Positions 7,926 through 29,017 of a stretch of DNA of 64,000 bases are shown here, in pieces (within the stretch, counting starts at the first letter, position 1; every line of letters starts with the position of its first letter). The notes under the pieces are model-generated. The model made no database searches. It saw only the letters and a program-made list of their open reading frames with translations, and was not told the DNA's origin. Both the position numbers and the translations under genes were made by a program. Source of the DNA: Paraphysomonas bandaiensis (taxonomy: Eukaryota > Protista > Chrysophyceae); assembly GCA_965644295.1 (NCBI GenBank), contig CBFFRP010000379.1:1-64000 (forward strand), written 5' to 3'.

Positions 7926-8233
7926 GGATTGAGGTAAGAGGCAGAGTTGGTGTTACTACTCGTACTTCACTTGTATTCTATCACTGGAATACCGCAAGCC
8001 TACTATGTACACGGTATACTGATGTATTCCGGTCTATACGTTGAGCGGAAGGGCGGTGGTCCACATATTTTTGTTTCGAGTGTTTGCAATGAACTAAAAA
8101 AATATGCTGCAGGCCATATGAGCATGAGCATGTATTCTGTGTATGTGTAGCTATAGAGAAGCATACGTGTGAGGTTCTAGTAGACTTATTTAACATATTA
8201 CGTTGTTAGACCACCTTACCACACTCATCCATA

Positions 8234-11028: not shown

Positions 11029-11430
11029 AAAAAAAAAGCAGGATGGTTTATACGCTCCGCTTGCAGGCAATGGGGTCCATTAAATCGAATCCCTAAAACC
11101 AATCCTATATTATAATTTTTAAAAAGTAATATAATTCATTTTTATATAACATTTTAATAATTCATTTTATATATATCTTTTTTATAATATATTATATATT
11201 AAGGGTTGAGGGTTTAGGGTAATTTTCAAGAGAAATAAAAATAGATAAAATAGTTATAATTATTATAATATGAGAAAGGGCATCAACCCTATACTCAACA
11301 CCAGCAGTAAAATAATATAGAGAGAATAGCAGTAGATTTTAAGATTGAAGTCCGCAGTAGCTACAAACGAGCTCGCCACCATACCTACTACACTATCTTA
11401 TCGTACCCACACAATACCCTCATCACTGTC
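11029..11430 (+). repeat. Left terminal inverted repeat
   Basis: Reverse complement of 28298-28699; identical by eye over the outer 388 bp, 2 mismatches in the inner 14 bp; the first two A may belong to the TSD. Confidence 0.97.
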
Positions 11431-11560
11431 TACTTATGTACTATGTCTTTAAGTCATATCGATATTTCAAAAAGGTTTAAAGAATTGATTTGTTGATTTC
11501 ATACCTAAAGTATTTCAACTTAAATAACACTTAAGTAATAAGCAATATAGATAATTATAA

Positions 11561-12097
11561 ATGAAAAACGAAATTGAACGTTGGACTGTCATACATGAAT
11601 ATGATGATTATGAAGTATCAAATCACGGAAGAGTTAAAAATAGCACAACTGGAAAGATGTTAAAGCTTGGAAAAAACAAACATGGATATCAGCTAGTCAG
11701 TTTAAACAAGAATGGAAATTACAAAACTTTGCGAGTTCATAGATTAGTTGCCGGTGCATTTTTGGACAATACACATAACAAGCCCTGTATTGATCACATT
11801 GATGGAGTTCGAGACAACAACAATTTATGTAATCTACGATACGCTTCATGTGCAGAGAACACTTACAATAAAAATGTCGTTGACAAAAGAAATACATCAG
11901 GATACACTGGCGTAAATTGGCATTCCTATGAAAAGAAATGGAAAGCACGAATAAAACATAAAGGAAATGATATAGAAATCGGACTGTATGATACAATCGA
12001 AGATGCTATTAAAGCAAGATGTAAAAAAGCAATTGAATTATTCGGAGACTTTGCAAACAAAGCAGACAAAGAATCTTATATGAAATATTTTATGTAA
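11561..12097 (+). CDS. NUMOD4-HNH-AP2 homing-type endonuclease
   Basis: YEVSNHGRVKN (NUMOD4); VHRLVA..F, IDHIDGVRDNNNLCNLR (HNH); NTSGYTGV.W...KWKARI....IGLY (AP2). Confidence 0.9.
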   Translation: MKNEIERWTVIHEYDDYEVSNHGRVKNSTTGKMLKLGKNKHGYQLVSLNKNGNYKTLRVHRLVAGAFLDNTHNKPCIDHIDGVRDNNNLCNLRYASCAENTYNKNVVDKRNTSGYTGVNWHSYEKKWKARIKHKGNDIEIGLYDTIEDAIKARCKKAIELFGDFANKADKESYMKYFM

Positions 12098-12258
12098 ACA
12101 AAGAAGGCAAGGAGCACAGTATAAGATCGCATCATTGCAATGAACGGACATTGCAACAGATTCAGTTTTAATATGAAATCTTCAATGGGCATTCTTGATA
12201 TCTTCAGTTTTTAGTGTTGTGTCCTGCATGTCAGCTTCAACTTCAAGAAAACGTCAGG

Positions 12259-12493
12259 TCACTCATTTGAGTGAAAACACCCCTCTGTTCACTGTTTTTG
12301 AGTGAAAAACACCCCTCTGTTCACTCATTTGGAGTGAAAAACACCTCTCTGTTCACTGTTTTTGAGTGAAAAACACCCCTCTGTTCACTGGTTTTGAGTG
12401 AAAAACACCCCTCTGTTCACTGGTTTTGAGTGAGGTGTCACTCATTTTGAGCGAAAACCCCCCCTGTTCACTGGTTTTGAGTGAAAAAACACC
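12259..12493. repeat. Tandem array of ~32-bp units with palindromic TCACT-N-GAGTGA core (8 cores)
   Basis: GAGTGA/GAGCGA cores at 12269, 12300, 12332, 12364, 12396, 12428, 12449, 12479. Confidence 0.9.
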
Positions 12494-12510
12494 AATTTCG
12501 AGAGAATAAA

Positions 12511-12699
12511 TTAAACGAACTTTAGGCCGTTGATTTTATTGTTCGCCTTTTTTCGTGCTCCGTTTACCTTCTTGTTGACTTTACTCTGAGCGCCACTGAC
12601 CTTCTTGTTCAGTTTCTTCTGGGCGCCGCTAACCTTCTTGTTAAGTTTATTCTGAGCGCCTGTAATCTTCTTATTGAATTTTGTTTTCAATCTGTCCAT
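12511..12699 (-). CDS. Small very basic repeat protein, putative DNA-condensing core protein
   Basis: 62 aa of 11-residue repeats K(L/V)NKKVSGAQK; function inferred from composition. Confidence 0.6.
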   Translation of the reverse strand: MDRLKTKFNKKITGAQNKLNKKVSGAQKKLNKKVSGAQSKVNKKVNGARKKANNKINGLKFV

Positions 12700-12743
12700 A
12701 GTAATAATATACCTATATATATTTTTCTCACGGAATATATATA

Positions 12744-13697
12744 ATGAAACCATTTTATACAGATGAAACATTCACGTATGTTGTCACCACAGCGAATAAA
12801 ACATCAGGAGATAATGCTTCATGCGAGATACCCATGCTCGCCTTGCTACCTTCAGATGTAGAATACTTTATATGTGTCCCCTTGTACTTTCAGTCCACAA
12901 GTAATTTGTTCTCTATTCCTTCGTCATCGGCTGTAATACTGGAGGCCAAAGACTTTGTAGAGATTGGATGTTCAACACACAAGACATCATCATTCAAAGC
13001 AGTAACTCCACCATTATTCGGAAGTGATGGAGGTTTGCATCGTTTATCCTTAGTCAATAATGTTAGTCAAATGAGGTATGTTGTTCGAAATTTCAACAAT
13101 AAAACCATTCAGTTTACATTTCGTAATGCTACAGGAATTGGTTTTCCCCAAAATGTTACAGCTCAAGGAGGGTGGGCTAAACAATGGATTTTACACCTGT
13201 CCTTAACACCTATAAGACAACACTCACCTTGTAAGTATATAATAAGCAATAAACATAAATCATTTACATACACCATTACAAATAAAGGTGCTGATGGTTC
13301 TGCAAATGATTGTTACATTACACTACCACCAATACATGACAATTATAATAGATACTTTGTTGATGTCATTGACTTTAGTGTAGATAATTCAACAATAGAC
13401 ACTGGTTCAGTAAGATACATAAACTTGTACTCTTTCAACTGGGCAGAAAATGGTTATGGAGGATATAACGATCAAACAGACAGAATGATTGTGTGCAGTC
13501 CATATATTAGAAATGCCAATGAACCTTCATTATATAGCGGAGATGGAGCAGTATTTATGATAAGCAATATGAAGCAATCTAGAAGAGTAAGGTTTAAAAT
13601 GTATGAAGCTACCCAAACAGAAGTAGTAAGCGGTGATATAGATAGCGGTGCAACAACTTATTACTACATAACATGTAAAATAACGCCTATTGACTAG
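12744..13697 (+). CDS. Protein with two tandem penton-like single-jelly-roll domains
   Basis: Internal repeat TFTYVVTTANKTSGDNASC / SFTYTITNKGADGSANDC, ending LSLTPI / CKITPI; motif order parallels the penton. Confidence 0.65.
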   Translation: MKPFYTDETFTYVVTTANKTSGDNASCEIPMLALLPSDVEYFICVPLYFQSTSNLFSIPSSSAVILEAKDFVEIGCSTHKTSSFKAVTPPLFGSDGGLHRLSLVNNVSQMRYVVRNFNNKTIQFTFRNATGIGFPQNVTAQGGWAKQWILHLSLTPIRQHSPCKYIISNKHKSFTYTITNKGADGSANDCYITLPPIHDNYNRYFVDVIDFSVDNSTIDTGSVRYINLYSFNWAENGYGGYNDQTDRMIVCSPYIRNANEPSLYSGDGAVFMISNMKQSRRVRFKMYEATQTEVVSGDIDSGATTYYYITCKITPID

Positions 13698-13722
13698 TAA
13701 TAATTTCTATTATAAATATATA

Positions 13723-14178
13723 ATGCAAAATACTCAAAGTTTTACGTATGTTATTTCATCGGCAAATGCTGCTTCAGGAGATGCTGAGAACTGTTACATA
13801 GATTTAGACCCATTGCCACAAAACTATGAATGGTATAGTGTTCAATGCACTGGATTTATTATGAATTGTGAATCATTAGCTGCTGGTCATCCTCAGTATG
13901 TTTTATTGGTAGCTGATGATTTGGCAGAAGATGGATATTATCAAGGATTTGATGGTAACCAATGTGTTTTATCATATCTTAATACAGATGACACTATATC
14001 ACAAATGACATCAGGAGAAGGGTCTTTGTTTAAAGTAAAGAACTTTAGACAAAAAAGAAGAATACATTTTAGTTTGTATGAACCAGATTTAACACCTATG
14101 GCTGGTGTTGTAGATGACTCTGCAACAACATATTGGTGCATATCATTGCTGTTTACACCTATTTTAGAGTTGAACTAA
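13723..14178 (+). CDS. Single penton-like domain protein (151 aa)
   Basis: SFTYVISSANAASGDAENC...YSVQ...RIHFSLYE...YWCISLLFTPI; paralog of both halves of the upstream gene. Confidence 0.65.
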   Translation: MQNTQSFTYVISSANAASGDAENCYIDLDPLPQNYEWYSVQCTGFIMNCESLAAGHPQYVLLVADDLAEDGYYQGFDGNQCVLSYLNTDDTISQMTSGEGSLFKVKNFRQKRRIHFSLYEPDLTPMAGVVDDSATTYWCISLLFTPILELN

Positions 14179-15780
14179 ATCAATATGCGTTTTCCAAAAT
14201 ATTGAACCTGATCCTACAGTTTGGAAATTATTATATGTATGAATTTCAAATGTCCAATTATCGGCAACATCTCCAACAGTAAATATAAGCGGTGCTAGAG
14301 TACAACCTACAGTACTAACACTTCCACGATTTGCATCCCATACACCCGGACCATAAAGAGTTGCTCTTTCTAGCGTTCCATTTTTCTTAACTAATACACG
14401 CGCGCGTATATCTGTCCATGATTTAATACCCATGATTTCAAAAGAAACTTGTAGCATGTATCGTCCTGTATACTGAATGTAACCTGATGAATCAATCATA
14501 TTTGAATCACCGCCTGTAGGTGTTGTACTCAATTCCGAAGATGTCATATAATGTCCACCGCTAGATGTTTGATAAGTTGTATTATAAGCCATGGATGAGA
14601 AATAAGTTACTGGATCATCAATTTCTTCCCAATAACAATTTTTTTTGCTAGTTAATGTATCCAAATCCGTTCTATCAGTAGCTGTGAACGCTGTTGTTTG
14701 AATGGTAGCATCTGGATATTCTACTTTTGTATAACAATTGATGTGATCACATCTTATTTCATCAATTGCGCCTCCTCCACCAGCTTTTAATAATGTATTG
14801 ACTGGGAAAGTCCATTCATTTGAACTTCTTGTTATATCATCTAATAATGTGCTATAATCAGAACTAAACGCTTTTGTTTGTTCGCTAGCATCTGAAAATT
14901 CTAGAACACCGCCCGATCCTGTGATTTCAAACCTACAATTACTTCCTGTCATTCTGAATGTGCTTCCTGTACCTGACACAGTATGTAATCCATAACTTTT
15001 ATTTAGTAATAGATCGCTTGAAATAGTTAAATCATCATATCCACCACCGGTATAAGACAAAGGTGTTATAGTTGATTCAATAGTTGCAATGTCAGATGTG
15101 TTTGTGGATATGTTTGATGTGTTAGTCGCTATATTGGTTGTATTGGTTGATATGTTAGATGTATTGGTTGATATGTTTGATGTGTTAGTCGCTATGTTAG
15201 ATGTATTGGTTGATATGTTGGTTGTGTTAGTAGATATATTTGATGTATTGGTTGCTATATTTGATTCGGCTGTTGAGAGGTCTACATCAATACTCGCAAT
15301 ATCTGCCGTGTTTGTTGCTATATCACTTGTATTGGTTGCTATGTTAGTTGCGTTTGTTGCTATATCACTTGTATTAGTGGCTATATTTGTGGTGTTTGTG
15401 GATATATTTGATGTATTGGTTGTAATATTGGTGGTGTTTGTGGATATATTTGATGTATTGGTTGCTATATTGGTGGTGTTTGTGGATATATTTGATGTAT
15501 TAGTTGATATGTTATTTGCATTCGTTGTAATTTGAGTTTGTGCGTTTGAAGTGAGTCCATCAATATAACTCAGTTCAACATCTGTTATAGTTGTGCCATT
15601 TGCGACAATACTAGCCCCCGATTGCATTGTTATATCAGTATCAATAATAATGTTACTCGTTTCAAGTGTGTCTAAATATATATTATCACTTGTTAAACTG
15701 CCAGTCGTTATTTCGTCCGCTTTTATTGTTTGTAATCCATTCAAAGATGGTATGTTTAATGATGTATAGCCATTATTCAT
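14164..15780 (-). CDS. Putative virion fibre/spike with trimeric coiled-coil stalk
   Basis: About 20 heptads IxTNTxN, LSYIDGLTSNAQTQI motif, two (F/Y)xDxxxQTxAF fibre-type motifs, beta-rich C-terminal head; adjacent to the MCP gene. Confidence 0.75.
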   Translation of the reverse strand: MNNGYTSLNIPSLNGLQTIKADEITTGSLTSDNIYLDTLETSNIIIDTDITMQSGASIVANGTTITDVELSYIDGLTSNAQTQITTNANNISTNTSNISTNTTNIATNTSNISTNTTNITTNTSNISTNTTNIATNTSDIATNATNIATNTSDIATNTADIASIDVDLSTAESNIATNTSNISTNTTNISTNTSNIATNTSNISTNTSNISTNTTNIATNTSNISTNTSDIATIESTITPLSYTGGGYDDLTISSDLLLNKSYGLHTVSGTGSTFRMTGSNCRFEITGSGGVLEFSDASEQTKAFSSDYSTLLDDITRSSNEWTFPVNTLLKAGGGGAIDEIRCDHINCYTKVEYPDATIQTTAFTATDRTDLDTLTSKKNCYWEEIDDPVTYFSSMAYNTTYQTSSGGHYMTSSELSTTPTGGDSNMIDSSGYIQYTGRYMLQVSFEIMGIKSWTDIRARVLVKKNGTLERATLYGPGVWDANRGSVSTVGCTLAPLIFTVGDVADNWTFEIHTYNNFQTVGSGSIFWKTHIDLVQL

Positions 15781-15828
15781 AATCGTTATACATTATAATT
15801 AGAAATTTAAATTAAGTATTTATTTATC

Positions 15829-17244
15829 TCAGAATTGAGTGTAGCAAACCCCGGCCTCGCACACCATAACAGCGTCATACATAGCGTAAGTATCAAATCT
15901 GACGGATGGAGTTGATGAATTAGCGTTATACGTACAGTGCCAGAACACATCATCATTAGAAGTATTATATCCTGAGTAGATAGAATCTTTATCAGCATTT
16001 GAATATGTTTCAAGATCCATACCAACAAAGAAAGCCTCAGAACTGGCGGTATCATCTACATAATTCTCTGTTTCAGCATTAACCGTAGGGACATCAACAT
16101 CATAATCTCCTAAATCAATATTTGGTTCGTGATTGATATCTGACACGCTACCTATAGCCTTTATAGCTTCAATGAAAAACTCAGGGACAGTCTCAGGAGC
16201 TTTTGATGGTACAACCTTAGAGCCCAATCTCAGCGTATAAGAAGCAAGATTATAGTGACAAGAACCCATAGGGAAATAAGTAATAGAACCGTCGGCATTT
16301 TCTCTTTGAGTCATAAAAAGAGATTTCAAGCTGTTGAATTTAGCTGGCACAGGTATAGATACCTGGGTCGTTGCATTATTTAAAGTGGCATTGTACACGT
16401 AGTTCCTCCATGCAGGAACCACCCACTCAAGTCTTCCACCAGGTGCGGAATTATTGATTATATTCATTGCTTCACTTCCAAGCTCCATAAATTGAGCAAT
16501 AAATTCACAGTTATTTACTTTAAAAGAGGACAATGCAAGTTCAGAACAAATGAATTTCGCTGGGCTAGAAACTAGTTGAAGTTCAAGTCTAAGAGGTGCG
16601 CTTGTCATTGCAAAGAGAGGAATGTATTTATCAGAAAGAGAACCAATAATAGATAAAAGGTTAATGGTGTAAGTTCTAGTAAGAGTATCTCCCGCGGCGG
16701 CGATATCTGCAAACTGTGTTGTTTGTCCATCATCAATAAGTCTTTCACCTGAGTTAATAGTAAAAACTTGGTTGGTTGCCCCTTGAATTTTTGTTAATAG
16801 AGTACCTGCATCTGCTACTGTTGAATCAGTCACATCACAAAAGGCATCTCTCGTTAACCCAGCCATAATGTTTAACTTACCTTTAGCAGAATCTCCAGAT
16901 TGTTGTAATGACATAAGCATGCCTACAAGATTTCCGTAATTATCAATATCTTCAAGTAATTGAGAACCATGATAAAGTCTAAGTCTTTGAATGCAACCGT
17001 GAGCTCCAGCTCTATCTAAACGGGCATAGGCATTTGCTCCAGCTCCATTAGTTACTGTCAAGTCAAATTTTAAGAGTGATTCAGACCCTGCCATGACGAG
17101 ATTCTGAGCTGTGGGGATATTAATGATGATAGTCTGCCCATCTAAGTAGTTTCCAACGCCATTCAATGGTTGTATGTGAGTGGAAAAGTTACGTGCGTAA
17201 GCGCTTGATCGCTTGTTAGTGTATAATAGGTTTTTAGGAATCAA
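15829..17244 (-). CDS. Major capsid protein (double jelly roll, PLV type); begins with TTG
   Basis: 471 aa, beta-rich; IPKNL...SAYARN...PLNG, IQRLRLYHGSQLLEDIDNYG, KYIPLFAM, FFVGMDLETY; clustered with penton and ATPase. Confidence 0.88.
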   Translation of the reverse strand: MIPKNLLYTNKRSSAYARNFSTHIQPLNGVGNYLDGQTIIINIPTAQNLVMAGSESLLKFDLTVTNGAGANAYARLDRAGAHGCIQRLRLYHGSQLLEDIDNYGNLVGMLMSLQQSGDSAKGKLNIMAGLTRDAFCDVTDSTVADAGTLLTKIQGATNQVFTINSGERLIDDGQTTQFADIAAAGDTLTRTYTINLLSIIGSLSDKYIPLFAMTSAPLRLELQLVSSPAKFICSELALSSFKVNNCEFIAQFMELGSEAMNIINNSAPGGRLEWVVPAWRNYVYNATLNNATTQVSIPVPAKFNSLKSLFMTQRENADGSITYFPMGSCHYNLASYTLRLGSKVVPSKAPETVPEFFIEAIKAIGSVSDINHEPNIDLGDYDVDVPTVNAETENYVDDTASSEAFFVGMDLETYSNADKDSIYSGYNTSNDDVFWHCTYNANSSTPSVRFDTYAMYDAVMVCEAGVCYTQF

Positions 17245-17304
17245 AATAGTTATATATTATATGGATAAAATTAATTATCTATATAATTTCAAAATAAATG
17301 CGTT

Positions 17305-17919
17305 TTATACTGTGTTGTTATTCATGTATTCTATATGTTTTTTGGTTTTAATATGCTTATGCATAGAATCTCTTCGCATAACTTGGCCACAACTACAGGT
17401 AACTTCTTGAGCACATCGTTTTTCATGTGGTTTTTTTTTATCTTTTCTGGGTTTTTTTATTCCCTTATGTTTGTTTGTTTTCAGATGCTTGTGAATAGAA
17501 TCTCTTCGCATTACAAGGCCACAAGTACAGGTAACTTCTTCAGCGCCACGTTTATTTTTGGCGTCCTTTCTGTCCTGTCTTTGATTTCTTATGCGTTCGT
17601 ATTCCTTTTTACTCTCCACGGTATGAACAACGTTTTTGATTTTATTAACACACTCATTATTTTGAATGTAGTACCCTTCTCTCGCATGTAATTCATCTTT
17701 ACTGTTACATGGATAGTTTTCTACTAAATAAATAGCACAGTCGGGTTCATCAAGTATTTTAAAGGATGAAACGAAGTGATCTTTACCTTTTTTGTAACCG
17801 TTATAATTGTTGCGATGCTTTGCTAATCTTCTGGCTAGCGTGGGTTCACATGTTGATCCGTAATAAGTTTTACCACCTCCAACAATCTTGTAAATTTTTC
17901 CTTTCTGATAATCAGGCAT
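17305..17919 (-). CDS. GIY-YIG endonuclease with two C-terminal Zn-finger-like repeats
   Basis: GKIYKI...YYGST...LARRLAKH...ELHAREGYYI; twice VTCxCGxVMRRDSxHKHxKTxKH. Confidence 0.85.
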   Translation of the reverse strand: MPDYQKGKIYKIVGGGKTYYGSTCEPTLARRLAKHRNNYNGYKKGKDHFVSSFKILDEPDCAIYLVENYPCNSKDELHAREGYYIQNNECVNKIKNVVHTVESKKEYERIRNQRQDRKDAKNKRGAEEVTCTCGLVMRRDSIHKHLKTNKHKGIKKPRKDKKKPHEKRCAQEVTCSCGQVMRRDSMHKHIKTKKHIEYMNNNTV

Positions 17920-17988
17920 ATTCTTTTATACTCTAATATATTCTTATATCTTAAAGTATTTTAAATTAAAAATTGACTTAAACATTAT

Positions 17989-18414
17989 TTATGCGAATCC
18001 ATCTTCATCTGCGGTTGCTTGTGCGATCTTTTTGCGCACATTGAACTTTTCGAGATCATTAGCATGTTTGTTGGCATGTTTAAGAGCTTTGTTACTTGCG
18101 TTCTTATATTTGTGTAAGGCCTTATCCCCTTTGTCAAGCCCTTTTCTAGCACCATGCAAAGCAGTCGATAATGCATTAACTCCGGGGACGGAACCAGCTC
18201 CAGCATCAACGGCGGCGCCTAGTACAGCGTCGGCTATATCTGCCCCTTTTCTAACGTTGTGCAAAACTTTTGACCCAGTATTAACTGCTTTACGGTTGAT
18301 CTTTTGTGCTTTTTGAAGTACGTCGTGAGATTTGTGCCCTAATTGATGAGCCTTCTTATCTATTTTGTGACCAAGTTTTCTAACACCTCGATCAAACTTC
18401 TTACCTAGTTTCAT
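17989..18414 (-). CDS. Basic protein with central Gly/Ala-rich segment, putative core protein
   Basis: LG(K/H)K repeats at the N-terminus, ADAVLGAAVDAGAGSVPG; lies in the structural gene cluster. Confidence 0.6.
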   Translation of the reverse strand: MKLGKKFDRGVRKLGHKIDKKAHQLGHKSHDVLQKAQKINRKAVNTGSKVLHNVRKGADIADAVLGAAVDAGAGSVPGVNALSTALHGARKGLDKGDKALHKYKNASNKALKHANKHANDLEKFNVRKKIAQATADEDGFA

Positions 18415-18438
18415 GTATATATATACACTATATTTTAA

Positions 18439-19173
18439 TTATTCTATATCAAGCTCTAGAGTTAAAGACCAATGAACTCCATTCAGATCAAGCACATCAT
18501 CATCTTGATCCGTGAGTTTAACATGTAAATTTGTTAAATTATGAACATTATAGATCATATTACGAACATTGTATATATTAGAGTAACTGATCATACTGTG
18601 ATGGGAAGAATCTACTGGAATACTGCATAATATATTACTTTTATTAGGTGTTGAATTGTTAATATTATTGATTTGAAAGTTATCAGATGTAACATAAACA
18701 TTTCTAATTGTGAATAAATTAATTGATATGGTACTTGTAAGCACTTGTGACGTTGACGAGTATGTTGTATCATCTGTAAAACCAAGAACTTCAAAACAAG
18801 TACTATTCGATTCAAATGTAAAATCATATGTACTATGTGAAAAGGTTAATTTGTTTGTTTTGCTGTTATATGTGATTGTTAAAGCGGGTATGCCAGTTGT
18901 AATTGCTGTTATCAAGGTATTAACGTTATAATTTCCTTCTGTAATAGTTAATGTTTGTACTCCACCACCATTGACTGTATATTTTAAAGTGTTATTAATT
19001 GAACTAATGTTATAAAATGAATAAGGTATCATCGCCGTTTGAACCGAACAAAATATCTTTCTATGTTTTGGTATGTTGATAACAGGTAAATGAAATATAC
19101 AATCTGATGTATTACCTGATATATATCTATTTGCACTTTTGCTATTTAAAAAGATGCACAATTTATCGCTCAT
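18439..19173 (-). CDS. Minor capsid protein (penton)
   Basis: IFLNSK...IPYSFYNI...EGNYN...LHVKLTDQD..LDLNGVHWSLTLEL, typical of PLV/Polinton pentons; next to the ATPase. Confidence 0.85.
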   Translation of the reverse strand: MSDKLCIFLNSKSANRYISGNTSDCIFHLPVINIPKHRKIFCSVQTAMIPYSFYNISSINNTLKYTVNGGGVQTLTITEGNYNVNTLITAITTGIPALTITYNSKTNKLTFSHSTYDFTFESNSTCFEVLGFTDDTTYSSTSQVLTSTISINLFTIRNVYVTSDNFQINNINNSTPNKSNILCSIPVDSSHHSMISYSNIYNVRNMIYNVHNLTNLHVKLTDQDDDVLDLNGVHWSLTLELDIE

Positions 19174-19507
19174 CTATATTATTACAATCATATATTTTTC
19201 TATTCATTAACTCCTCTAATGGGGAATCACTGATATTTTCAGCTATAGTTTCAAGTACTTGCTGCCATCCTGGAATGTGAAAACCTGTCCCATTGGGCAT
19301 ATTTTTTAATACATGACGTATACCTTGTCTTTTAAAAGAATCGTTGTAGTGTAACATATTTATATCTATAACTTCATCTAAGCGTTTTGGTCTGACCTGA
19401 TAATCAAGTTCATCCGGTAGTTCATCCTCTGAGTCGGATGATAAATAATACTGCGTTTCAGAATCATATTGCAATTCGGTTGAATCATTTTCTGTATCAC
19501 TGTTCAT
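19163..19507 (-). CDS. Acidic hypothetical protein
   Basis: 114-aa ORF with TATATA-ATG leader between the ATPase and penton. Confidence 0.65.
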   Translation of the reverse strand: MNSDTENDSTELQYDSETQYYLSSDSEDELPDELDYQVRPKRLDEVIDINMLHYNDSFKRQGIRHVLKNMPNGTGFHIPGWQQVLETIAENISDSPLEELMNRKIYDCNNIDER

Positions 19508-19526
19508 TATATATATTGATTAGATA

Positions 19527-20258
19527 TTAATTATTATCAATTGTCAAAGTATTAAAGTTTTTAAATAATTTGTTTTCAACTGTATCCACATCTAAATGAT
19601 TATAGTTTTTATCATAAACATAATCATAGAGCTCAACCGCATTATCTTTCGTCATATTTAAAAGCTCTGATGTCACAACTGTCCACTCTTGCTGATTTTT
19701 AGGTTTAAACAAAGACATGTTAGTTATTTGTTTTCTCAATGTTAAGGGAAATAAATTATATGATTGTAATGTAAACACAAAAGCAGTATTTAAATGCCTT
19801 GCTTTGATAAGCATTCTGTTTAAATGTTTAATTAAAACATTGTCTTTTAAATGATTTGCATAATCATCAATAATAACTAAATTATATTCTGGAGGTATGC
19901 CCTGCTCTATGTTACTTTCTTTTAAGTTTGATAATTCATCATATATTATATCCAATAATTCCGGTGTTAATTCATGATATACCTTTCCATGCTCACTAAA
20001 TGGATGCTTTTCTACACTGAGAAAGCTACTCTGTGGGGTGATTAAGTATATATTATCAAACTTGGCTCTGTAAAACCTAGATGACTTAAACATTGACAAT
20101 AATAAGCTTGTTTTTCCTGATCCACCAGATCCTATTAAAGTATATATAAACCCATTTCGATGTGGTAAGTGTTCATTGATGTTTGGTATATAGACGTCCA
20201 TAACTTCTTTAATAGGTGCTGTATTAGGCAAATCAGAAGGTGTTTCTGTTATCTTCAT
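19527..20258 (-). CDS. A32-like (FtsK/HerA) genome packaging ATPase
   Basis: Walker A GSGGSGKT, Walker B LVIIDD, ARH motif, LQSY, LRKQ. Confidence 0.92.
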   Translation of the reverse strand: MKITETPSDLPNTAPIKEVMDVYIPNINEHLPHRNGFIYTLIGSGGSGKTSLLLSMFKSSRFYRAKFDNIYLITPQSSFLSVEKHPFSEHGKVYHELTPELLDIIYDELSNLKESNIEQGIPPEYNLVIIDDYANHLKDNVLIKHLNRMLIKARHLNTAFVFTLQSYNLFPLTLRKQITNMSLFKPKNQQEWTVVTSELLNMTKDNAVELYDYVYDKNYNHLDVDTVENKLFKNFNTLTIDNN

Positions 20259-20316
20259 TATATTATGAGTAAATATATTAATATTTTGTAAATATTTTTT
20301 CTACGGTAACTATATA

Positions 20317-20871
20317 ATGGTAGAACCCGAAGAATATATAGAAGAATCAATTCCTTTGACAAAACCAAAAAGACAGGTCAAACAACTCGCAACCATACCA
20401 GAGGAGCCTGTTAACACACCCCAAGCACCTATTCAGTCCACTCCTGTAAAAAAGAAAAGAGTGATGACAAAGCCTAAAACACAAGCCCAACTACAAGCAT
20501 TTGAAAAGGCTAGACAAAAAAGAGCAGAGAATGCTGCAAAGAGGCAACAAGAAAAGGAATTACATTACGCTCAATTATTAGCCAAACATCAAGAAGAGCA
20601 ATCAGTAACAAAGACAGATCCCGAACCAAAACCAACACCAAGGCCTGTTGTTAAACGAGCTCCAAGGCAAAAAATAATATATGATGATTCAGAATCAGAT
20701 GAAGAGGTTATAGTTGTTAAAAGACCATCAAAAAGAAAACCAAAAAAGAAAACAATTGTGGTCGAATCATCAGAATCTGAATCAGAATCAGAAGATGAAC
20801 AAGTATCTATACAAAGACAACCCGCTCCACAAAGACATGTGACTTTTAATTCAGATGATTATTTCGCATAA
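20317..20871 (+). CDS. Hypothetical K/E/S-rich protein
   Basis: 184-aa ORF with TATATA-ATG leader; low complexity. Confidence 0.7.
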   Translation: MVEPEEYIEESIPLTKPKRQVKQLATIPEEPVNTPQAPIQSTPVKKKRVMTKPKTQAQLQAFEKARQKRAENAAKRQQEKELHYAQLLAKHQEEQSVTKTDPEPKPTPRPVVKRAPRQKIIYDDSESDEEVIVVKRPSKRKPKKKTIVVESSESESESEDEQVSIQRQPAPQRHVTFNSDDYFA

Positions 20872-20900
20872 TATTATCTTTCACTATTATATAAATACTA

Positions 20901-21965
20901 ATGAAGGAGAAGAAAATCTATTTATCTCTTGACGACTTACATAAACTTTATGGTATTGCACCAGATTTGATTTTAAAAAGAAAAAGAACAAAGAAAAAGC
21001 GCAAAGCTAAAGGCAAAAAGAAAACTAATTTTGGTACTGGTGTAAATAAGCAATTTGGGGGTGGTGGTGGTGGACCGGCCACTGCAGGTGTGGGTGCTGT
21101 ACATAGCTCAACTATTGACAGAAGAGAGATTGATATATTGCGAGGTCAGTTAAATGAAGCTAAAAACAACCCAAAGAATCCCGCCAATGAAGGTGTTTTG
21201 AGACTTGAAAATGTTCCAGAAGAGTTAAAAGAGACTTTCAAATTTGCAAAATTAGCTAATGACGGGTATGCGACTGGAAATATTAAAGTCTCTAAATCTC
21301 CAGCTGGAAATTTAATTATGGGTCCAACATCTCAAAAACAAAAAACTGCGCAACGTAGAAGAGCCATTGATATATCCAGCAAGGCAGATAATACCATCAA
21401 CCCCGCACCACCAATATCTACAAGCAATGATTTGATGTATACACAGCCATTAGAATTTAAATCAAATGATCAGGTGGAAGAATTAGACGATGGTGTTGAG
21501 GATTTGCCTTTAGAGCCACAAACTAAATTAGCTAAACCAAAAGGCAGAACTCAAAAACAGAAAGAAGCAACAAAACAATTAGTTCAACGTAGTAAAGACA
21601 AGAAAAGCGAAAGATTGAACAGAGAAGGTATGGAGGCAGAGGACTATGATGCCGATAAAGCAATTAGAGCCAAAAATCACTATGAAAAAAGACACATGAG
21701 ACAAGGATTAGAAGGCTTGTTTGTCAATATGGAACCCATTACCGGACAAATGAGTCGAACAAGACGAACAGAAATGAATATAAAACAAAAAGATGAAATA
21801 GAGGATGAGAACATGCATAAACTAAGAACAAAGCATTATGTCCGAACTCATAAAATCAAGCCACCAAGCACACCGGTACCAGCAGAATATTTTACTCCCA
21901 GAAAAGAAAATGAATTTGGCTGGGATGAATGGCGCAGTGATATCTCAGATGATGGTTTCGCTTAA
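20901..21965 (+). CDS. Hypothetical basic protein with K-rich tract and poly-Gly
   Basis: 354-aa intact ORF. Confidence 0.7.
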   Translation: MKEKKIYLSLDDLHKLYGIAPDLILKRKRTKKKRKAKGKKKTNFGTGVNKQFGGGGGGPATAGVGAVHSSTIDRREIDILRGQLNEAKNNPKNPANEGVLRLENVPEELKETFKFAKLANDGYATGNIKVSKSPAGNLIMGPTSQKQKTAQRRRAIDISSKADNTINPAPPISTSNDLMYTQPLEFKSNDQVEELDDGVEDLPLEPQTKLAKPKGRTQKQKEATKQLVQRSKDKKSERLNREGMEAEDYDADKAIRAKNHYEKRHMRQGLEGLFVNMEPITGQMSRTRRTEMNIKQKDEIEDENMHKLRTKHYVRTHKIKPPSTPVPAEYFTPRKENEFGWDEWRSDISDDGFA

Positions 21966-22004
21966 ATATAAAATGTTTAAATATTTTGTGTCACAATTAT
22001 ATAA

Positions 22005-22508
22005 ATGAGAAAAGTAGTTATTAAAGACAACGACAACAACAGACCTCTTGGAGTTGAAGAAACTAAAGAGATAGAAACTGAAGTTAAACGTGAATGTAGT
22101 TTTAGACATCGATCGATTCCAGACAAAAAACTATTTAATGTTGAGTTAAATGGACTTTCTGACAAAATTAAAGAAATTAAACTCGAAAATCAGCAGTACG
22201 AATTAGTTACTAAAATTCAATCTGTTTTAGATCTCTTTGATCCTGATTCAAATAAATACAATGAACAAATTCTATTATTTACTTGTCAAGCAGTTGAAAA
22301 TTTTATCACAAAACCAAAATCTGGTGATAGAAAACTGGCGGTTGTAGTTGAAGCAGTTAAAAAATATTTCAATAATGACATAGAATTGATTGTCAAAATG
22401 GTTGAGATATTACTACCACGAATTAAAAAAATGAATTTCATTAGACGTAATTGGAAAAGAGTAGCACGTTTTTTTTGCGGTCTGCAGCCGAGCGAGCCGT
22501 CGATATAG
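22005..22508 (+). CDS. Hypothetical protein; alternative -1 frame C-terminus to 22564
   Basis: 167-aa ORF; T8 run at 22469-22476. Confidence 0.7.
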   Translation: MRKVVIKDNDNNRPLGVEETKEIETEVKRECSFRHRSIPDKKLFNVELNGLSDKIKEIKLENQQYELVTKIQSVLDLFDPDSNKYNEQILLFTCQAVENFITKPKSGDRKLAVVVEAVKKYFNNDIELIVKMVEILLPRIKKMNFIRRNWKRVARFFCGLQPSEPSI

Positions 22509-22587
22509 CTATAACAAAAGCTTTTAAAATATTACTATTACCTATGATACTTGCTGTTTTATAATTTTATTGATTATTAATATAATA

Positions 22588-22854
22588 ATGAATAAAGAGA
22601 AACTTAAACAGTATAATCATGAATATTACTTAAAGAATAGAGACACGTTATTGATTCGAAATAGAATTTACTATTTCAATAATAAAGCTAAATGCAATGA
22701 GTATGCTAGAAACTATTATCATACTAAAATTAAAACACTTAAAGAGAACAATGAATATAAGAAATGGGTCCACACAAAAAAGGATACCAAAAGGAAAAAA
22801 CAGAAAAAATATAAAGTTATCGATGATGATACATTTATAATAAATTTTACTTAA
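22588..22854 (+). CDS. Hypothetical Y/K/N-rich helical protein
   Basis: YNHEYYLKNR-type repeats common in viral DNA-binding proteins. Confidence 0.55.
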   Translation: MNKEKLKQYNHEYYLKNRDTLLIRNRIYYFNNKAKCNEYARNYYHTKIKTLKENNEYKKWVHTKKDTKRKKQKKYKVIDDDTFIINFT

Positions 22855-23267
22855 AGATTTCTATGTTTACTTGAACATTTATGTTTAGTTTTTTCAGATT
22901 CTGGAAATGATTCTTGACATCCCCAACAATACATCAATGGATCAGTTTCACGAGAAGGTCGTTTACTGACCGCGCCTCTTGAACCAGCAGGGAGCTGATG
23001 CTTCAGCGAGTCGTCTTGTTTAGATTTCTTGATGTCTTCTAATTCTTGTTTTATTGCTTCTAATTCGCTTGAAACATTTAACTTTGCTTGTCTTCTCTCT
23101 GCCGTTGTCATGCATACTTTTGATGCTTGATGTTTCTTCATATTTTGATGCGATACTATTCTGCCACATTTTAAACATTCTTCTTTTTCAAATAGCTTTG
23201 CACATATTGCGCTTTTCTTTTCAGCGTAGTATTTTTTATTATACTCTCTTCTTGAATCTTTGTTCAT
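22851..23267 (-). CDS. Zn-finger hypothetical protein
   Basis: CLKCG...H....VC and CWGC...HKC; ACTTAA 36 nt upstream. Confidence 0.65.
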   Translation of the reverse strand: MNKDSRREYNKKYYAEKKSAICAKLFEKEECLKCGRIVSHQNMKKHQASKVCMTTAERRQAKLNVSSELEAIKQELEDIKKSKQDDSLKHQLPAGSRGAVSKRPSRETDPLMYCWGCQESFPESEKTKHKCSSKHRNL

Positions 23268-23357
23268 TATACTATACTCTTATATATTAATTTCTTTTTA
23301 AGTGTTTTTTACTAAATTAGTTTATTTATATTTTTTATATGTGTATTATATATCATT

Positions 23358-24404
23358 ATGAATGATCTTATTAAAAAATATGATATCGATGAAACATTAA
23401 CAAGACCAAGTAAACAAACCAAGAAGAAAAGATATAATCGAATAAAAGATAATATACCACTTAAAGAAAATTATAACTTTATGGCGGATGTGTTGCATTT
23501 ACCAAAAGATAAAAAAGGATATCAATATTTATTAGTTGTTGTTGATTTGGCAACTGATGAGTTTGATATGGAACCAATGAAAACAGAAAACTCTGATGAA
23601 ACTTTAAAAGCAATAAAGGTGATATTTCATCGTAATCATCTTAATAAACCGTACGCTTCTATTCGAACAGATGGCGGTGCATCATTTAAAAAAGGTTTTG
23701 CAAAATATTTGTACGACGAAAGTATATTACATAACGTTGCATTAGCGGGACGACATAAACAAATGTCGGCAGTGGAGAGTTTAAATAGAACATTAGGTAG
23801 ATTTTTCAATGGTTATATGAACAGCATTGAGTTAAAAACTGGAAAAATTTATAGAGAATGGACTGATATAGTTGATAGGCTAAGAATAGATTTGAATAAA
23901 CTAAGAAAAAAAGATGTGTCTGATATTGACTTGGCAACACATAAGTATCCTGTTCCAGACACAACCAAATCAAAACCTAAATATAATGTGGGTGACTTTG
24001 TGTATCGAAAATTAGACAAACCCAAAAATGCTTTAAATGAAACTATTAATTCTGATGTGTTCCGAGAAGGTGACTTCCGCTTTGACCCTATACCTGTACA
24101 AATTAAACAAATATTGTATTATCCTGGAAAAGTTACATACAGATATATGTTAAGTGGTATTAAAAATGCATCCTTTACAGAAGATGAACTAATGCCTGCA
24201 CCTGATGCCGAAGAAGAACAAGTTGAAATTAAAAAGATTCTTGATAAGCGATTTTTTGATGGCGAAAATCACTATCAAGTTTGGATGTATGGAGAGTTAA
24301 AAAAAGACGCGGGATGGTATGCTAAAAGTGATTTACTAAAAACTGTTGATAAAAAGTTATTAGATGATTTTGATAAAAGCATTAAGAAAAAGAAAAAACG
24401 TTAA
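23358..24404 (+). CDS. Retroviral-type (rve) DDE integrase with C-terminal chromodomain-like region
   Basis: ADVLHLP..YLLVVVD, IRTDGGASF, VESLNRTL (D,D,E); IKKILDKR...HYQVWMYG....GW. Confidence 0.92.
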   Translation: MNDLIKKYDIDETLTRPSKQTKKKRYNRIKDNIPLKENYNFMADVLHLPKDKKGYQYLLVVVDLATDEFDMEPMKTENSDETLKAIKVIFHRNHLNKPYASIRTDGGASFKKGFAKYLYDESILHNVALAGRHKQMSAVESLNRTLGRFFNGYMNSIELKTGKIYREWTDIVDRLRIDLNKLRKKDVSDIDLATHKYPVPDTTKSKPKYNVGDFVYRKLDKPKNALNETINSDVFREGDFRFDPIPVQIKQILYYPGKVTYRYMLSGIKNASFTEDELMPAPDAEEEQVEIKKILDKRFFDGENHYQVWMYGELKKDAGWYAKSDLLKTVDKKLLDDFDKSIKKKKKR

Positions 24405-25651
24405 CAACATTCTTCAATATGTGTTTTTATGTCCTTGTATTTAAGTCGCTCGTCACACTTTGGACATATATGATTGTATCCATTTACATGTCTCCATTCA
24501 ATCATACCCGAAGTTTTATCTTCTCGCAATAGATTGGGTATATCTAACTTTGGATCTTTCTTAAAAGTAACGTTATCGGTGTGAATACGAATGACGTTAT
24601 CAATATCCTTTAATGCTACTTCTGCTATTTTGTTTCTTGCATATGAAAGCAAAAACGGAAGTAGTCTAATATTGTATTTAAAAGGATTATTCGAATCTAA
24701 AAGTTTGTAATTCTCTTCATCGTTACTATGTGCTGACATATACTTATCCTGTACAATATAATCGCATTCTTTTGTATATCCCCAGTCATAACCTTCATTT
24801 TCTAATTCATCATATGATTTATATATCATATTGTACTGCGTTAACGTTCCCCATAGCGATGACATCAAATGTTTTACAAGTTTATTGTTGGGATACAACT
24901 TTTTTAACTGAATTAAACGATTGTACCATTCTCCAAATATTTCACTAGCTTTTACTAAATCTTTTGTTCTGTATATGTATGCGTTTGGTTTATCATCAAC
25001 AATTAACTCAATATTTACATCAAATTTCTTTTTGTATTTCATTGCATGTTTTAGAGATATATGAGTATATGTATGTTTTGGAGAAAATGAAAATATCTTT
25101 TTAAAGTTTTTATTATCAGATGTAATTTTAACTCTGTATAATCCGTATTTAAGTTTAGAACGTTTTTTTAACTTCTTTAAGTATTTTTCTTTTCCTTTCT
25201 TTGTTGGTATTATAAAATTATCATCTATCAATAAAGATGGATAAAATCCACTAAAATCGTATCCATATGAATTAAATACTCCCGGTTCGCAAAACTGTAA
25301 ACCTGCATTATAACAATCTTGAAAGTATCCATTTTCTATTTTTTTAATCCTGTCATGGTGTTCATATTTTCCTTTACAATATTGCATAAAGACACATTTA
25401 ACAGCGCCCAAGTGTGAATGAAATTTTTTGTAATCAATTGACAAGTTTTTAGTAAATCTCATCTCTCTACACCACGCCCTGAAATCTTTACCATACTGTT
25501 TTATTCCTTCATCTGATGCTTCGTATCCTTTAAACAATTGATACGCATATTCTAATTTCATACATTTCTCATGTGACATGTCTGAAAAGATGTAGTTCTT
25601 AACATCTAAAACTCTGTACATGGCACTATTCATTTTATAATAAAAATACAT
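24401..25651 (-). CDS. Short divergent family-B DNA polymerase lacking an exonuclease domain
   Basis: YNAG (YxGG/A), YDFSGFYPS (motif A), KHLMSSLWG (motif B), IHTDNV (motif C); C-terminal CPKC...H...C. Confidence 0.8.
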   Translation of the reverse strand: MYFYYKMNSAMYRVLDVKNYIFSDMSHEKCMKLEYAYQLFKGYEASDEGIKQYGKDFRAWCREMRFTKNLSIDYKKFHSHLGAVKCVFMQYCKGKYEHHDRIKKIENGYFQDCYNAGLQFCEPGVFNSYGYDFSGFYPSLLIDDNFIIPTKKGKEKYLKKLKKRSKLKYGLYRVKITSDNKNFKKIFSFSPKHTYTHISLKHAMKYKKKFDVNIELIVDDKPNAYIYRTKDLVKASEIFGEWYNRLIQLKKLYPNNKLVKHLMSSLWGTLTQYNMIYKSYDELENEGYDWGYTKECDYIVQDKYMSAHSNDEENYKLLDSNNPFKYNIRLLPFLLSYARNKIAEVALKDIDNVIRIHTDNVTFKKDPKLDIPNLLREDKTSGMIEWRHVNGYNHICPKCDERLKYKDIKTHIEECC

Positions 25652-25696
25652 TCTATATATTATTATTATATTAATTATTTTTTAAGTAGTTTTATA

Positions 25697-26050
25697 TTAA
25701 ACAAAATTATCCTCAATATCATCGGGTACAAAGGCAGTAATTTGCAATTGTGAGAACTTTGAAAACTTATCTGTGTCTTTGACTCTATTTGCATAATAAT
25801 CTTCTTCATCATCAACATTGAGGTCACTATAAAATCCTTTGAGTGTGCTCCATCTGGCTGCGTTTAAAGCGCGCACCATAAATAGTTTATTTGGATCTGA
25901 ATTTTGCAATCCTTGTACAATATCGCGTACATCTTGAGCAGAGATATTATTCTTTTTGTCATTTCTGTACAATTGTATTGTTCGTTCTTTTCCGTGCTTC
26001 ACAGTTTTCTCTTTGATAATCTTTTTAGTGTAAACAGACTTTTTTACCAT
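25697..26050 (-). CDS. Hypothetical protein in the replication module
   Basis: 117-aa ORF with ACTTAA 37 nt upstream. Confidence 0.65.
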   Translation of the reverse strand: MVKKSVYTKKIIKEKTVKHGKERTIQLYRNDKKNNISAQDVRDIVQGLQNSDPNKLFMVRALNAARWSTLKGFYSDLNVDDEEDYYANRVKDTDKFSKFSQLQITAFVPDDIEDNFV

Positions 26051-26092
26051 TATATATAACTAAACTATATATAATAATTTTTTAAGTACTTT

Positions 26093-27694
26093 TTAATTTA
26101 GTAAATCAATAATTTCATTTAATTCTTCTTTTTCAATTTTTTGTTGTTTAAATATATTTGTTTTAAATGTTTCGGGTATGGGTTCATCGTCATTGTCAGT
26201 ATCATATTCAAAAGTAACTTTCTTAACTTTGACCATCTTAGATTTCTTTAGTTTAACCTCTTCGGGTTCTCTTAATCTATACAATTCATCTTGAAGCTTT
26301 TTTATTTTTTCTTGTAATTTCATATAATCTTCTGCTCTAACATACTGTGCTTTATCATCTGATTTAATGTATTTTGGAACAGGTTCATTTACTTCTTCAA
26401 CACCGTCGGTTAGTGTATAATACTTCTCTGAGATCAAATAATTTTCTAATTCTTTAATATTGCATCGGTACGATCTGCCTTTTTTAGTATTTATTTTCTT
26501 TATGACTTCGTGCTGTTTCATTTCTAGTCCAAACTTTGTAATATTAGTTTTGTATTCAAAGCCATTTTGTTTTAGAAACAAACAATATCTATTGTAGAAG
26601 TCTGTTGCACTTGCTTTTAACTCTTCTGTTTTGTCTAATTCTTCTTGCATGACATTAACTAAAAATTGCGCTGTAATTGGAATATTTCTCTCTTGTAAGT
26701 CATTATAGTAAGATGTTATAGGTCTCTCTTTTTGAAATGACTTTACTTTAATTTTTCTATTCAATAAGTAATCATAAAATGCTCTGTCATATATTCCGCT
26801 GTTTATTTCGTCATGTAAATTGTTAAAATATTCTTCTGAATGCTTTTTCGATGGAATTTTTCTAGCAGTAAAACGCCTATCGTTATGTTCTATTTTAATG
26901 CTGTCAAAGTTGTTAGTTAAAACTACCCAATTTATATGATTTCTCTCGTGCCTTGTTTTTTCTTTCTTTATTCTAATTGAATTTATATCTCTTGTAATTG
27001 CGTTTTTAATTGCCTCAATTATTTCATCCGTCTTTGCTCTTTTACTTTCATTTAGTACGATTAAGCATTTGTGTGATATATCTTCATTAAAGTTCCCACC
27101 AATCAACATATCAATATGATCCTCATTTAAATAGTATTCTGGTCCCAATATTTTAATACCAAAATGATTTAACCCTGTATCTTTACCATCTCCTGGTTTA
27201 GATTGTAGTGACATTGAAACATCTGTTTTATTACCTGTCTGTACTATATATGCAAAATAATCCATCGCATAGTCAAACATTTCATCACCAAATAGGTACT
27301 GATAATGTTTAAACATTAAACTATTTTCAAATTTAAGATCAGTCTTTTTTAATTTTGAAGCTCTCCATCCGTTCCATTGATTGTATTGATCATTTGATAC
27401 TTCCTTACATGGCTCAAATACAATCTCTTTATATGTTCTTATACAAGGGTCTCGCATCCAATCGTTGACAAACATACAATGTTTTTTCTCAGACACTTCT
27501 GTTCCGTCCTTCTTACTTTTTGTTTCAATCTTTGTATAAAATAAGTTTTCATACAATGTTAACATTTCGTGCTTGGATCTCATTACAATCTTTTCATCAA
27601 CAATTTGAACGTATGTAACGGGGTTAATAACTTTGAAGTGAGTCTTTTCAAAAGTAACTTTCAATTCTTTGTAAGAAATTTCTTTACTTGTCAT
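26093..27694 (-). CDS. SF3 (D5-like) helicase/NTPase without an evident primase domain
   Basis: Walker A-like SKPGDGKDT, Walker B LIVLNE, motif C VVLTNN, NDRRF. Confidence 0.85.
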   Translation of the reverse strand: MTSKEISYKELKVTFEKTHFKVINPVTYVQIVDEKIVMRSKHEMLTLYENLFYTKIETKSKKDGTEVSEKKHCMFVNDWMRDPCIRTYKEIVFEPCKEVSNDQYNQWNGWRASKLKKTDLKFENSLMFKHYQYLFGDEMFDYAMDYFAYIVQTGNKTDVSMSLQSKPGDGKDTGLNHFGIKILGPEYYLNEDHIDMLIGGNFNEDISHKCLIVLNESKRAKTDEIIEAIKNAITRDINSIRIKKEKTRHERNHINWVVLTNNFDSIKIEHNDRRFTARKIPSKKHSEEYFNNLHDEINSGIYDRAFYDYLLNRKIKVKSFQKERPITSYYNDLQERNIPITAQFLVNVMQEELDKTEELKASATDFYNRYCLFLKQNGFEYKTNITKFGLEMKQHEVIKKINTKKGRSYRCNIKELENYLISEKYYTLTDGVEEVNEPVPKYIKSDDKAQYVRAEDYMKLQEKIKKLQDELYRLREPEEVKLKKSKMVKVKKVTFEYDTDNDDEPIPETFKTNIFKQQKIEKEELNEIIDLLN

Positions 27695-27750
27695 TTATAT
27701 ATAATACTATATATAAATATTTCCTTAAGTATTTTTAAATTAAATTAAAA

Positions 27751-28197
27751 TTAAAAACCAAATTTCATTTGTCGTTGTTTTGCACGATATGCTTCTTGAT
27801 ACTGTCTTATTTTTTCCTTATTCTTTTCTCTGTATTCTTTACTGGACGTAGCTATCCTTTCTTTATTCTTTTCTCTGTATTCTTTACTGGACGTAGCTAT
27901 CCTTTCTTTATTCTTTTCTCTGTATTCTTTACTGGACGTAGCTATCTTTTCTTTATTCTTTTCTCTGTATTCTTTACTTGATTCAGCTATCTTTTCTTTA
28001 TTTAGCTTTCTATACTGTTTATTGTAATCTTTCTTTTTCTCTTTATTTTCCCCAAACTTTTTGACAAGTGTCTCGCAATTTAGATGATCACTGTATACAA
28101 ACCAACATTTCATATTTGAATCCCACTGGGCGCCTAACAGTTTAGCATCATCTTTGAGTTCGAAATCGACATTAAGAAATATCCTGAAAGTTTTCAT
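27751..28197 (-). CDS. DUF5710-like domain protein with 15-aa tandem repeats
   Basis: FLNVDFELKDDAKLLGAQWD....WFV; repeats SKEYREKNKERIATS (45 bp). Confidence 0.75.
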   Translation of the reverse strand: MKTFRIFLNVDFELKDDAKLLGAQWDSNMKCWFVYSDHLNCETLVKKFGENKEKKKDYNKQYRKLNKEKIAESSKEYREKNKEKIATSSKEYREKNKERIATSSKEYREKNKERIATSSKEYREKNKEKIRQYQEAYRAKQRQMKFGF

Positions 28198-28297
28198 TTA
28201 CTTTATAATATTACTGTAGTGCCTTATTCTTAAGTAGTTTTAATATAAAAAATACTTTAAGTACATATTACCTGATGTCTGACCATGAAACATTTTC

Positions 28298-28699
28298 GAC
28301 AGTGATGACGCTATTGTGTGGGTACGATAAGATAGTGTAGTAGGTATGGTGGCGAGCTCGTTTGTAGCTACTGCGGACTTCAATCTTAAAATCTACTGCT
28401 ATTCTCTCTATATTATTTTACTGCTGGTGTTGAGTATAGGGTTGATGCCCTTTCTCATATTATAATAATTATAACTATTTTATCTATTTTTATTTCTCTT
28501 GAAAATTACCCTAAACCCTCAACCCTTAATATATAATATATTATAAAAAAGATATATATAAAATGAATTATTAAAATGTTATATAAAAATGAATTATATT
28601 ACTTTTTAAAAATTATAATATAGGATTGGTTTTAGGGATTCGATTTAATGGACCCCATTGCCTGCAAGCGGAGCGTATAAACCATCCTGCTTTTTTTTT
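28298..28699 (-). repeat. Right terminal inverted repeat
   Basis: Reverse complement of 11029-11430; followed by GCTGAA. Confidence 0.97.
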
Positions 28700-29017
28700 G
28701 CTGAACTTGAATTCGCACAGTAATCAACTAGTAAAATTTTAAGCAACAATATGTATGTCTCATCATTCATTGATAGTGATTACTACTAATCAATATTATC
28801 TAAAGGTTGGGACTCACAACTCCCTCAGAGGCACCAATTCAAACTCAACTTGAAAGAGTCTGTGGCTCACAAATCCACTGTAGTCTGACCTCGTGTGGAC
28901 TACGTAATTTTGAAAATGCAGTGGTGAGTATACTTCAACTATTATTTGCAGCGGCCAAACAGATGCTCCAAGCGTCCGTGGGCAGCTCCCACACATATAT
29001 ATAGCAATAGGTATTTT

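Follow-up and report, generated by a model that had tools for sequence, protein, structure and literature searches.

The window analyzed here, meaning the whole stretch of 64,000 nucleotides, is eukaryotic DNA whose long flanking ORFs code for an aldehyde dehydrogenase, TB2/DP1, WD40 and PP2C proteins and an IRE1-like kinase-RNase. Lodged within it is a 17,671-bp element (Table 1), which is a polinton-like virus (PLV) integrated into the DNA of a marine microbial eukaryote. The perfect agreement of its two 402-nt terminal inverted repeats (TIRs), along with a direct repeat of 4-6 bp at both flanks (11025-11028 and 28700-28703), suggests a recent integrase-mediated insertion. In addition to the tabulated genes, the element codes for an HNH/NUMOD4 endonuclease, the rve integrase and two ORFs of 204 and 141 aa. 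Copies of its proteins with 94-98% identity are present in Tara Oceans and other marine metagenomes, and more distant relatives of the element are likewise integrated beside eukaryotic genes. Next to the fibre gene lie two ORFs, here ORF1 and ORF2, which an earlier note on this DNA had singled out as coding for three additional penton-like domains, and whose coordinates it had correctly placed.

Table 1. Positions in the window of the integrated element, its repeats and its main genes
Feature	Position	Strand	Basis or remark
Integrated polinton-like element (PLV)	11029..28699		17,671 bp; TIRs, flanking repeat, low GC, rve integrase, DUF5906 helicase
Left terminal inverted repeat	11029..11430		402 nt, perfect copy of right TIR
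Right terminal inverted repeat	28298..28699		402 nt, perfect copy of left TIR
ORF1, 317 aa	12744..13697	+	tandem of paralogous domains A-B
ORF1 domain A (aa 1-159)	12744..13220	+	hhalign to ORF2 family and to domain B
ORF1 domain B (aa 160-317)	13221..13694	+	BLASTP and hhalign to ORF2
ORF2, 151 aa	13723..14178	+	stand-alone third copy (C-type); ATG at 13723, stop end 14178
Fibre gene, 538 aa	14164..15780	-	Asn/Thr-rich heptad-like repeats; PHROG repeat match
Major capsid protein (MCP), 471 aa	15829..17244	-	weak Pfam Capsid_N match; full-length match to related-PLV MCP profile
Putative penton (minor capsid protein), 244 aa	18439..19173	-	Pfam DUF5901; between ATPase and MCP
A32-type packaging ATPase	19527..20258	-	Pfam Pox_A32, E 3.4e-13
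Helicase ORF (DUF5906)	26093-27694	-	covers only the C-terminal ~58% of relatives' profile (~736 aa)
DUF5710 ORF, 148 aa	27751-28197	-	separate, directly upstream of helicase ORF

Several features of the surroundings deserve mention in their own right. The helicase and DUF5710 ORFs are either two separate genes or the two pieces of a gene that was split once. No enrichment of the mimivirid early-promoter octamer was found. Divergent from ORF1 is a small ORF with lysine-rich repeats (12511-12771, minus strand), a 62-aa version of which occupies the same place in 6/6 Tara/Logan contigs; it may specify a basic DNA-binding or core protein. Outside the element, a solitary second penton-like ORF of 233 aa (3037-3738, minus strand; DUF5901, E 2.9e-9) sits in an AT-rich stretch (2-6 kb, GC 0.26-0.34) and leaves about the last quarter of the penton profile unmatched, with one truncation. 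Since the main element's other gene families go undetected in the window outside 11-28.7 kb, this ORF looks like the remnant of another PLV insertion.

Three copies of one domain and their family

The proposal that the 317-aa ORF is a tandem duplicate and the 151-aa ORF a third copy of the same domain, of ~150-155 aa, is borne out by profile-profile comparisons (Prob 92-99.8%). In BLASTP searches, ORF1 residues 172-316 match ORF2 with 34% identity (E 8e-24) and residues 8-159 with 26% identity (E 1e-7), while the two halves of ORF1 recover each other only weakly (E 0.017). With small family profiles, hhalign joins domains A and B over the full domain length (Prob 92.4, E 5e-7) and gives likewise full-domain matches between A and ORF2 (Prob 97.4) and between B and ORF2 (Prob 99.8). 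A mechanical version of ORF2 begins at a TTG at 13690 and would have 162 aa. All three domains are under purifying selection, with dN/dS against the Tara variant of 0.118 for domain A, 0.136 for domain B and 0.161 for ORF2. This constraint, together with the conservation described below, leads us to reject a non-gene explanation: ORF1 and ORF2 are real, constrained genes.

Word searches recovered six relatives of ORF2 and four of ORF1. An exhaustive profile search among 1.84 billion proteins brought the count to 112 representatives at E up to 1e-3, two of which, bacterial cadherin-repeat proteins aligned over a 30-residue stretch, were spurious and were discarded. The ~110 valid representatives are nearly all singles of ~150 aa or tandems of ~310 aa; domain HMMs sort them into 67 C-type singles, ~20 A-B tandems and 18 A-type proteins, some of them fragments. 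A, B and C stay separate orthologous types throughout the family, and the tandem architecture is retained in relatives down to 32% identity. The near-invariant positions (F7, Y9, F103, W138) are aromatics of the core that lie in strands, a pattern to be expected of a scaffold rather than of an enzyme.

Neither ORF has a Pfam or PHROG match, no Pfam family was matched by 66 family members, and none of these 66 matches DUF5901 (PF19254) at E up to 1. PDB sequence and profile searches with ORF1 and the domain profile returned chance matches only, and a pattern-based scan of IMG/VR with the family alignment found no relative. A phage tail-fibre chaperone or adhesin was considered and discarded, there being no PHROG match and no relative by tblastn among 50,697 phage records. 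The family, which is absent from Pfam, is now defined and can be searched for in PLV catalogues.

Relationship to the putative penton and predicted fold

Our yardstick for penton likeness is the 244-aa protein of the element itself, a putative penton by its slot between the ATPase and the MCP, by its presence in all related elements and by DUF5901, which 10 of 19 penton relatives match. The order ATPase-penton-MCP is as reported for Gezel-14T; PDB profile and sequence searches gave no named penton for this protein, and none was found by sequence for the extra domains.

Using a profile of 66 sequences, hhalign aligns ORF2 58-145 with penton 157-242 (Prob 85.3, E 6e-6, score 40.8), and the probability rises to 92-93 when more divergent IMG/VR pentons are added. 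Against the real score of 40.8, the 61 controls gave 13.6 (reversed alignment), at most 15.7 (30 column shuffles) and at most 20.8 (30 block shuffles). The match is also specific: the penton is the sole match among 14 gene families of the element, the other 13 remaining at Prob 1.6 or less, with the double-jelly-roll MCP family at 0.1. In the reciprocal direction, an HMM of the extra domains run over 980 ORFs of related PLV contigs places penton ORFs at seven of the ten top non-family matches (hypergeometric P 2e-10), at weak HMM-to-sequence scores of 10-17 bits. Plain BLASTP between the penton and ORF1 or ORF2 was non-significant, as were shallow domain profiles of 6-7 sequences; only the 66-sequence alignment brought the signal out. 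The earlier note's expectation of profile similarity to the penton was upheld for the element's putative penton, in a specific form and with clean controls.

This similarity is confined to one part of the domain. The N-terminal half of the extra domain shows no significant similarity to the penton (best Prob 0.4), and homology is therefore supported for β-strands E to I only. Accordingly, the claim that a whole series of motifs aligns in order with the penton holds for its three C-terminal motif pairs, which fall inside the significant alignment, and finds no support in the N-terminal half, where no significant similarity was detected. The companion claim that the domains lack the penton insertion stands insofar as they are ~95 residues shorter than the penton; the missing part could be either an internal insertion, as in the Sputnik penton with its extra β-barrel between strands D and E, or an N-terminal extension. 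On the strength of these profile comparisons, the extra domains probably descend from the same ancestor as the penton's jelly-roll core, a partial and specific relationship that extends over strands E to I.

It might be argued that this likeness is a convergent patterning of strands, and that the extra domains form a non-virion β-sandwich active, for example, in interactions with the host or a helper virus, or as a nucleoplasmin-like chaperone. Such a reading could draw on the presence of a nucleoplasmin-like plant protein (7vmf) among the Foldseek PDB matches of ORF2, on the N-terminal half without penton similarity and on the weak absolute scores. We consider it very unlikely, because the shuffled and reversed controls and the 13 other families, including that of the jelly-roll MCP, fail to reproduce the signal, which instead grows with the diversity of the alignment, and because the genes are constantly found at the end of the structural module (see below).

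In terms of structure, the AlphaFold2 model of ORF2 built from the 66-sequence alignment (pLDDT 87.7, pTM 0.83) is all-beta, with strands in the series that a jelly roll should have, and that of the ORF1 tandem (pLDDT 71.5, pTM 0.75) has two sets of nine beta segments, with the same series twice. Foldseek matches of ORF2 to jelly-roll proteins have probabilities of 0.95-1.00. Judged from the strand series and the fold matches, the extra domains are predicted to be jelly rolls of the eight-stranded (BIDG/CHEF) type; models and fold searches agree here with the fold that the earlier note had proposed. In the PDB, ORF2 matches the Eph ligand-binding domain, MAM, Cry domain III and the cucumber mosaic virus coat protein, and, with a TM among the highest in the matches listed (0.45/0.42), 6ncl_a6, a 167-residue chain of the PBCV-1 capsid. 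In the PBCV-1 paper, the MCP and penton P1 are the only proteins described as jelly rolls, P1 being without the insertion of the Sputnik penton, and the length and fold of 6ncl_a6, rather than the text of the entry, lead us to take this chain to be P1. What bears on homology to a recognised penton of the Bamfordvirae is the Prob of 85-93% between half of the domain and the putative penton of the element, and by fold the PBCV-1 chain at TM 0.45. The solved pentons of Sputnik and adenovirus and PRD1 P31 are absent among the Foldseek matches listed. Among predicted viral structures, ORF2 has its top matches in uncharacterised small proteins from algal giant viruses and in an adintovirus protein (TM 0.64/0.61), with small iridovirus proteins also present. 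The tandem model gave only generic two-domain matches of low TM.

In the PDB search, cellular jelly rolls that bind ligands (Eph domain, MAM, Cry domain III, CBM22) are ranked level with viral ones, and it is this similar scoring that makes a receptor-binding function, lectin- or TNF-like, the main rival. Here, the extra domains would be carbohydrate- or ligand-binding jelly rolls placed at the fibre's distal end, or separate adhesins, comparable to phage adhesins encoded beside tail-fibre genes or to the trimeric knobs of the TNF/C1q type, with the three domains mimicking a trimer. The top PDB matches invoked for it comprise tandem CBM22, PNGase F, the Eph ligand-binding domain, MAM, Cry domain III and the receptor-binding protein of the lactococcal phage 1358; further, the genes adjoin the fibre gene and exactly three distinct domains have been retained. 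However, within the element the penton is the only partner of the profile link, searches of Pfam, PHROGs and phage records brought up no relative, and the matches to binders have low TM values, those to CBM22, the Eph domain and MAM being significant by E-value with TM of just 0.2-0.39. Moreover, the fibre protein already has its own large C-terminal globular part, with a Pfam phage tail Collar domain in its orthologues in the contigs L014 and L015, and the conserved residues belong to the core rather than to a surface site. All told, we regard receptor binding as unlikely, if the most serious of the competing ideas.

Gene order in relatives and a candidate role at the vertex

Both in the window and in the Tara contigs, the genes for the tandem and the single domain are convergent with the fibre gene, the 3' ends of ORF2 and the fibre gene overlapping by 15 nt. 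In distant relatives, the order is co-directional: ATPase, small ORF, penton, small ORF, MCP, fibre (Collar), tandem (305/404 aa) and single (146/149 aa). By comparison with contigs L011, L012, L014 and L015, in which the pair is co-directional downstream of the fibre gene, tandem and single are inverted relative to the fibre gene in the lineage of the window. Synteny with the structural module holds to ~30% identity and across an inversion. In L011, a metagenomic PLV, the penton gene is in two pieces through one frameshift, and the tandem and single genes are intact.

How common are such additional domains? The usual annotation of PLVs, virophages and related viruses lists a single MCP and a single penton. 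Among 22 distinct IMG/VR contigs (23 loci) with a related penton, which were collected via the penton and not via the extra domains, a detectable extra copy occurs in only two, in keeping with the earlier note's view that this is not the usual layout. Our search of the PLV literature found no description of such a tandem-plus-single set. The relatives carry from one to three recognisable extra domains. In L016 and L039, a single extra domain directly follows the MCP with no adjacent fibre gene, which implies that a strict fibre-anchor role is not general.

Their position also bears on whether the extra domains are themselves pentons, either replacing the 244-aa protein at some vertices, such as a unique vertex, or joining it in a mixed pentamer. 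Such a function would fit the homology to the penton core and the existence of an insertion-less penton type in PBCV-1 and iridoviruses, and two tandems plus one single would furnish five jelly rolls, a number compatible with a pentamer. Yet the extra domains are not the single-copy gene in the ATPase-penton-MCP slot; they lie beyond the fibre gene, and the canonical slot is already filled by the intact, universally conserved 244-aa gene. The variation in recognisable extra domains among relatives also speaks against such a substitution, which we hold to be decidedly improbable.

We instead favor, with moderate confidence, the proposal that the extra domains are penton-derived accessory virion proteins, a set of three jelly rolls at the vertex or the fibre base. 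Under this proposal, ORF1 and ORF2, genes of the virion-morphogenesis module of the PLV, encode three paralogous single jelly rolls of ~150 aa, probably related by descent to the penton core, which would work as a fixed set of three distinct units, A-B as one chain and C as another. They would not be enzymes. Their place would be at the capsid vertices, on or next to them, or at the base of the fibre, where they might, for instance, serve as an adaptor that links the pentameric penton to the fibre, form a second tier between these two, or build a specialised capsomer. We infer their presence in the virion, their hetero-oligomerisation and their location there. The conserved three-domain set by the fibre gene is a concrete candidate for complexity of the vertex or fibre base in this lineage.

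Known virions offer several partial parallels. First, the pentons of the PBCV-1 P1 and iridovirus VP14 types are small eight-stranded jelly rolls without crown or insertion. The extra domains resemble P1 in being small jelly rolls and in having the PBCV-1 chain among their best TM matches to solved structures; they differ in that this TM is only ~0.45, without sequence similarity, and in that P1 is the sole penton of PBCV-1, whereas here three domains coexist with a distinct and larger putative penton. Second, with the Sputnik or virophage-type penton and the PLV minor capsid protein, as represented by the 244-aa protein, they probably share the jelly-roll core of strands E to I; unlike the 244-aa protein, they are shorter, lack a DUF5901 match and have their slot after the fibre gene. 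Third, the yaravirus-like mriyaviruses have several paralogous single-jelly-roll minor capsid proteins per small genome, as indicated by structure modelling, and are the nearest precedent for such paralogues. However, these belong to another family, combining a C-terminal jelly roll with a variable N-terminal domain, and no tandem-plus-single set by a fibre gene is described for them.

Two further systems have comparable jelly-roll proteins at the vertex. The PRD1 vertex combines the penton P31 with the spike protein P5, the N-terminal domain of which resembles P31; as might be the case here, one virus employs a penton-like jelly roll again in another of its proteins, one associated with the vertex or fibre. 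The PRD1 copy forms part of the spike itself, whereas here the genes are separate and two copies are fused together; no PRD1 proteins are among the fold-search matches listed. In the archaeal virus STIV, A223 and the turret proteins are vertex proteins with two or more jelly rolls per chain, and hence parallel the tandem jelly rolls of a candidate accessory vertex protein, but they show no detectable similarity to it and belong to a different lineage.

With two jelly rolls in one polypeptide, ORF1 also recalls the double-jelly-roll (DJR) MCPs. These (PM2 P2, phiCjT23 and an iridovirus MCP) rank low in the Foldseek list of the tandem. An identification of ORF1 as a DJR MCP is not supported, given their TM of only 0.14-0.17, the Prob of 0.1 against the element's own MCP family and the normal 471-aa MCP that is already present. 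A natural fusion of two single jelly rolls nonetheless bears on the old question of the origin of double jelly rolls. As a speculation to which we assign a low probability, A-B could be an independent and comparatively recent fusion of penton-derived single jelly rolls, which together with C forms a pseudo-symmetric capsomer of its own with three, five or six jelly rolls. Were this to be true, it would represent a specialised vertex or fibre-bearing capsomer arising from paralogues of the penton rather than of the MCP, and a living model for the origin of double-jelly-roll capsid proteins from single ones.

Finally, the related contigs present some variants and possible outliers of the family. 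In L014 the tandem (14555-15769, plus strand) is enlarged to 404 aa by big loop insertions, and in L020 a 387-aa protein (6793-7956, minus strand) lies upstream of a single domain, in the same position as the tandem. A jackhmmer search of a small local set linked neither protein to the tandems; by domain HMM, the 404-aa protein does link to them, and further sequence searches gave no link for the 387-aa protein. ORFs of ~180-200 aa in other PLV contigs (L022 15479-16036, L026 137-676, L028 7707-8312, L023 4197-4775 and L036 12002-12610) give weak matches of 6-14 bits to the extra-domain HMM and none to the other families of the window's element; they may be more diverged members of the family. 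The contig IMGVR_UViG_3300033073_001022 (L016/L017) bears two mirror-image ATPase-penton-MCP-single blocks, which reflect either a head-to-head duplication or an assembly artefact.
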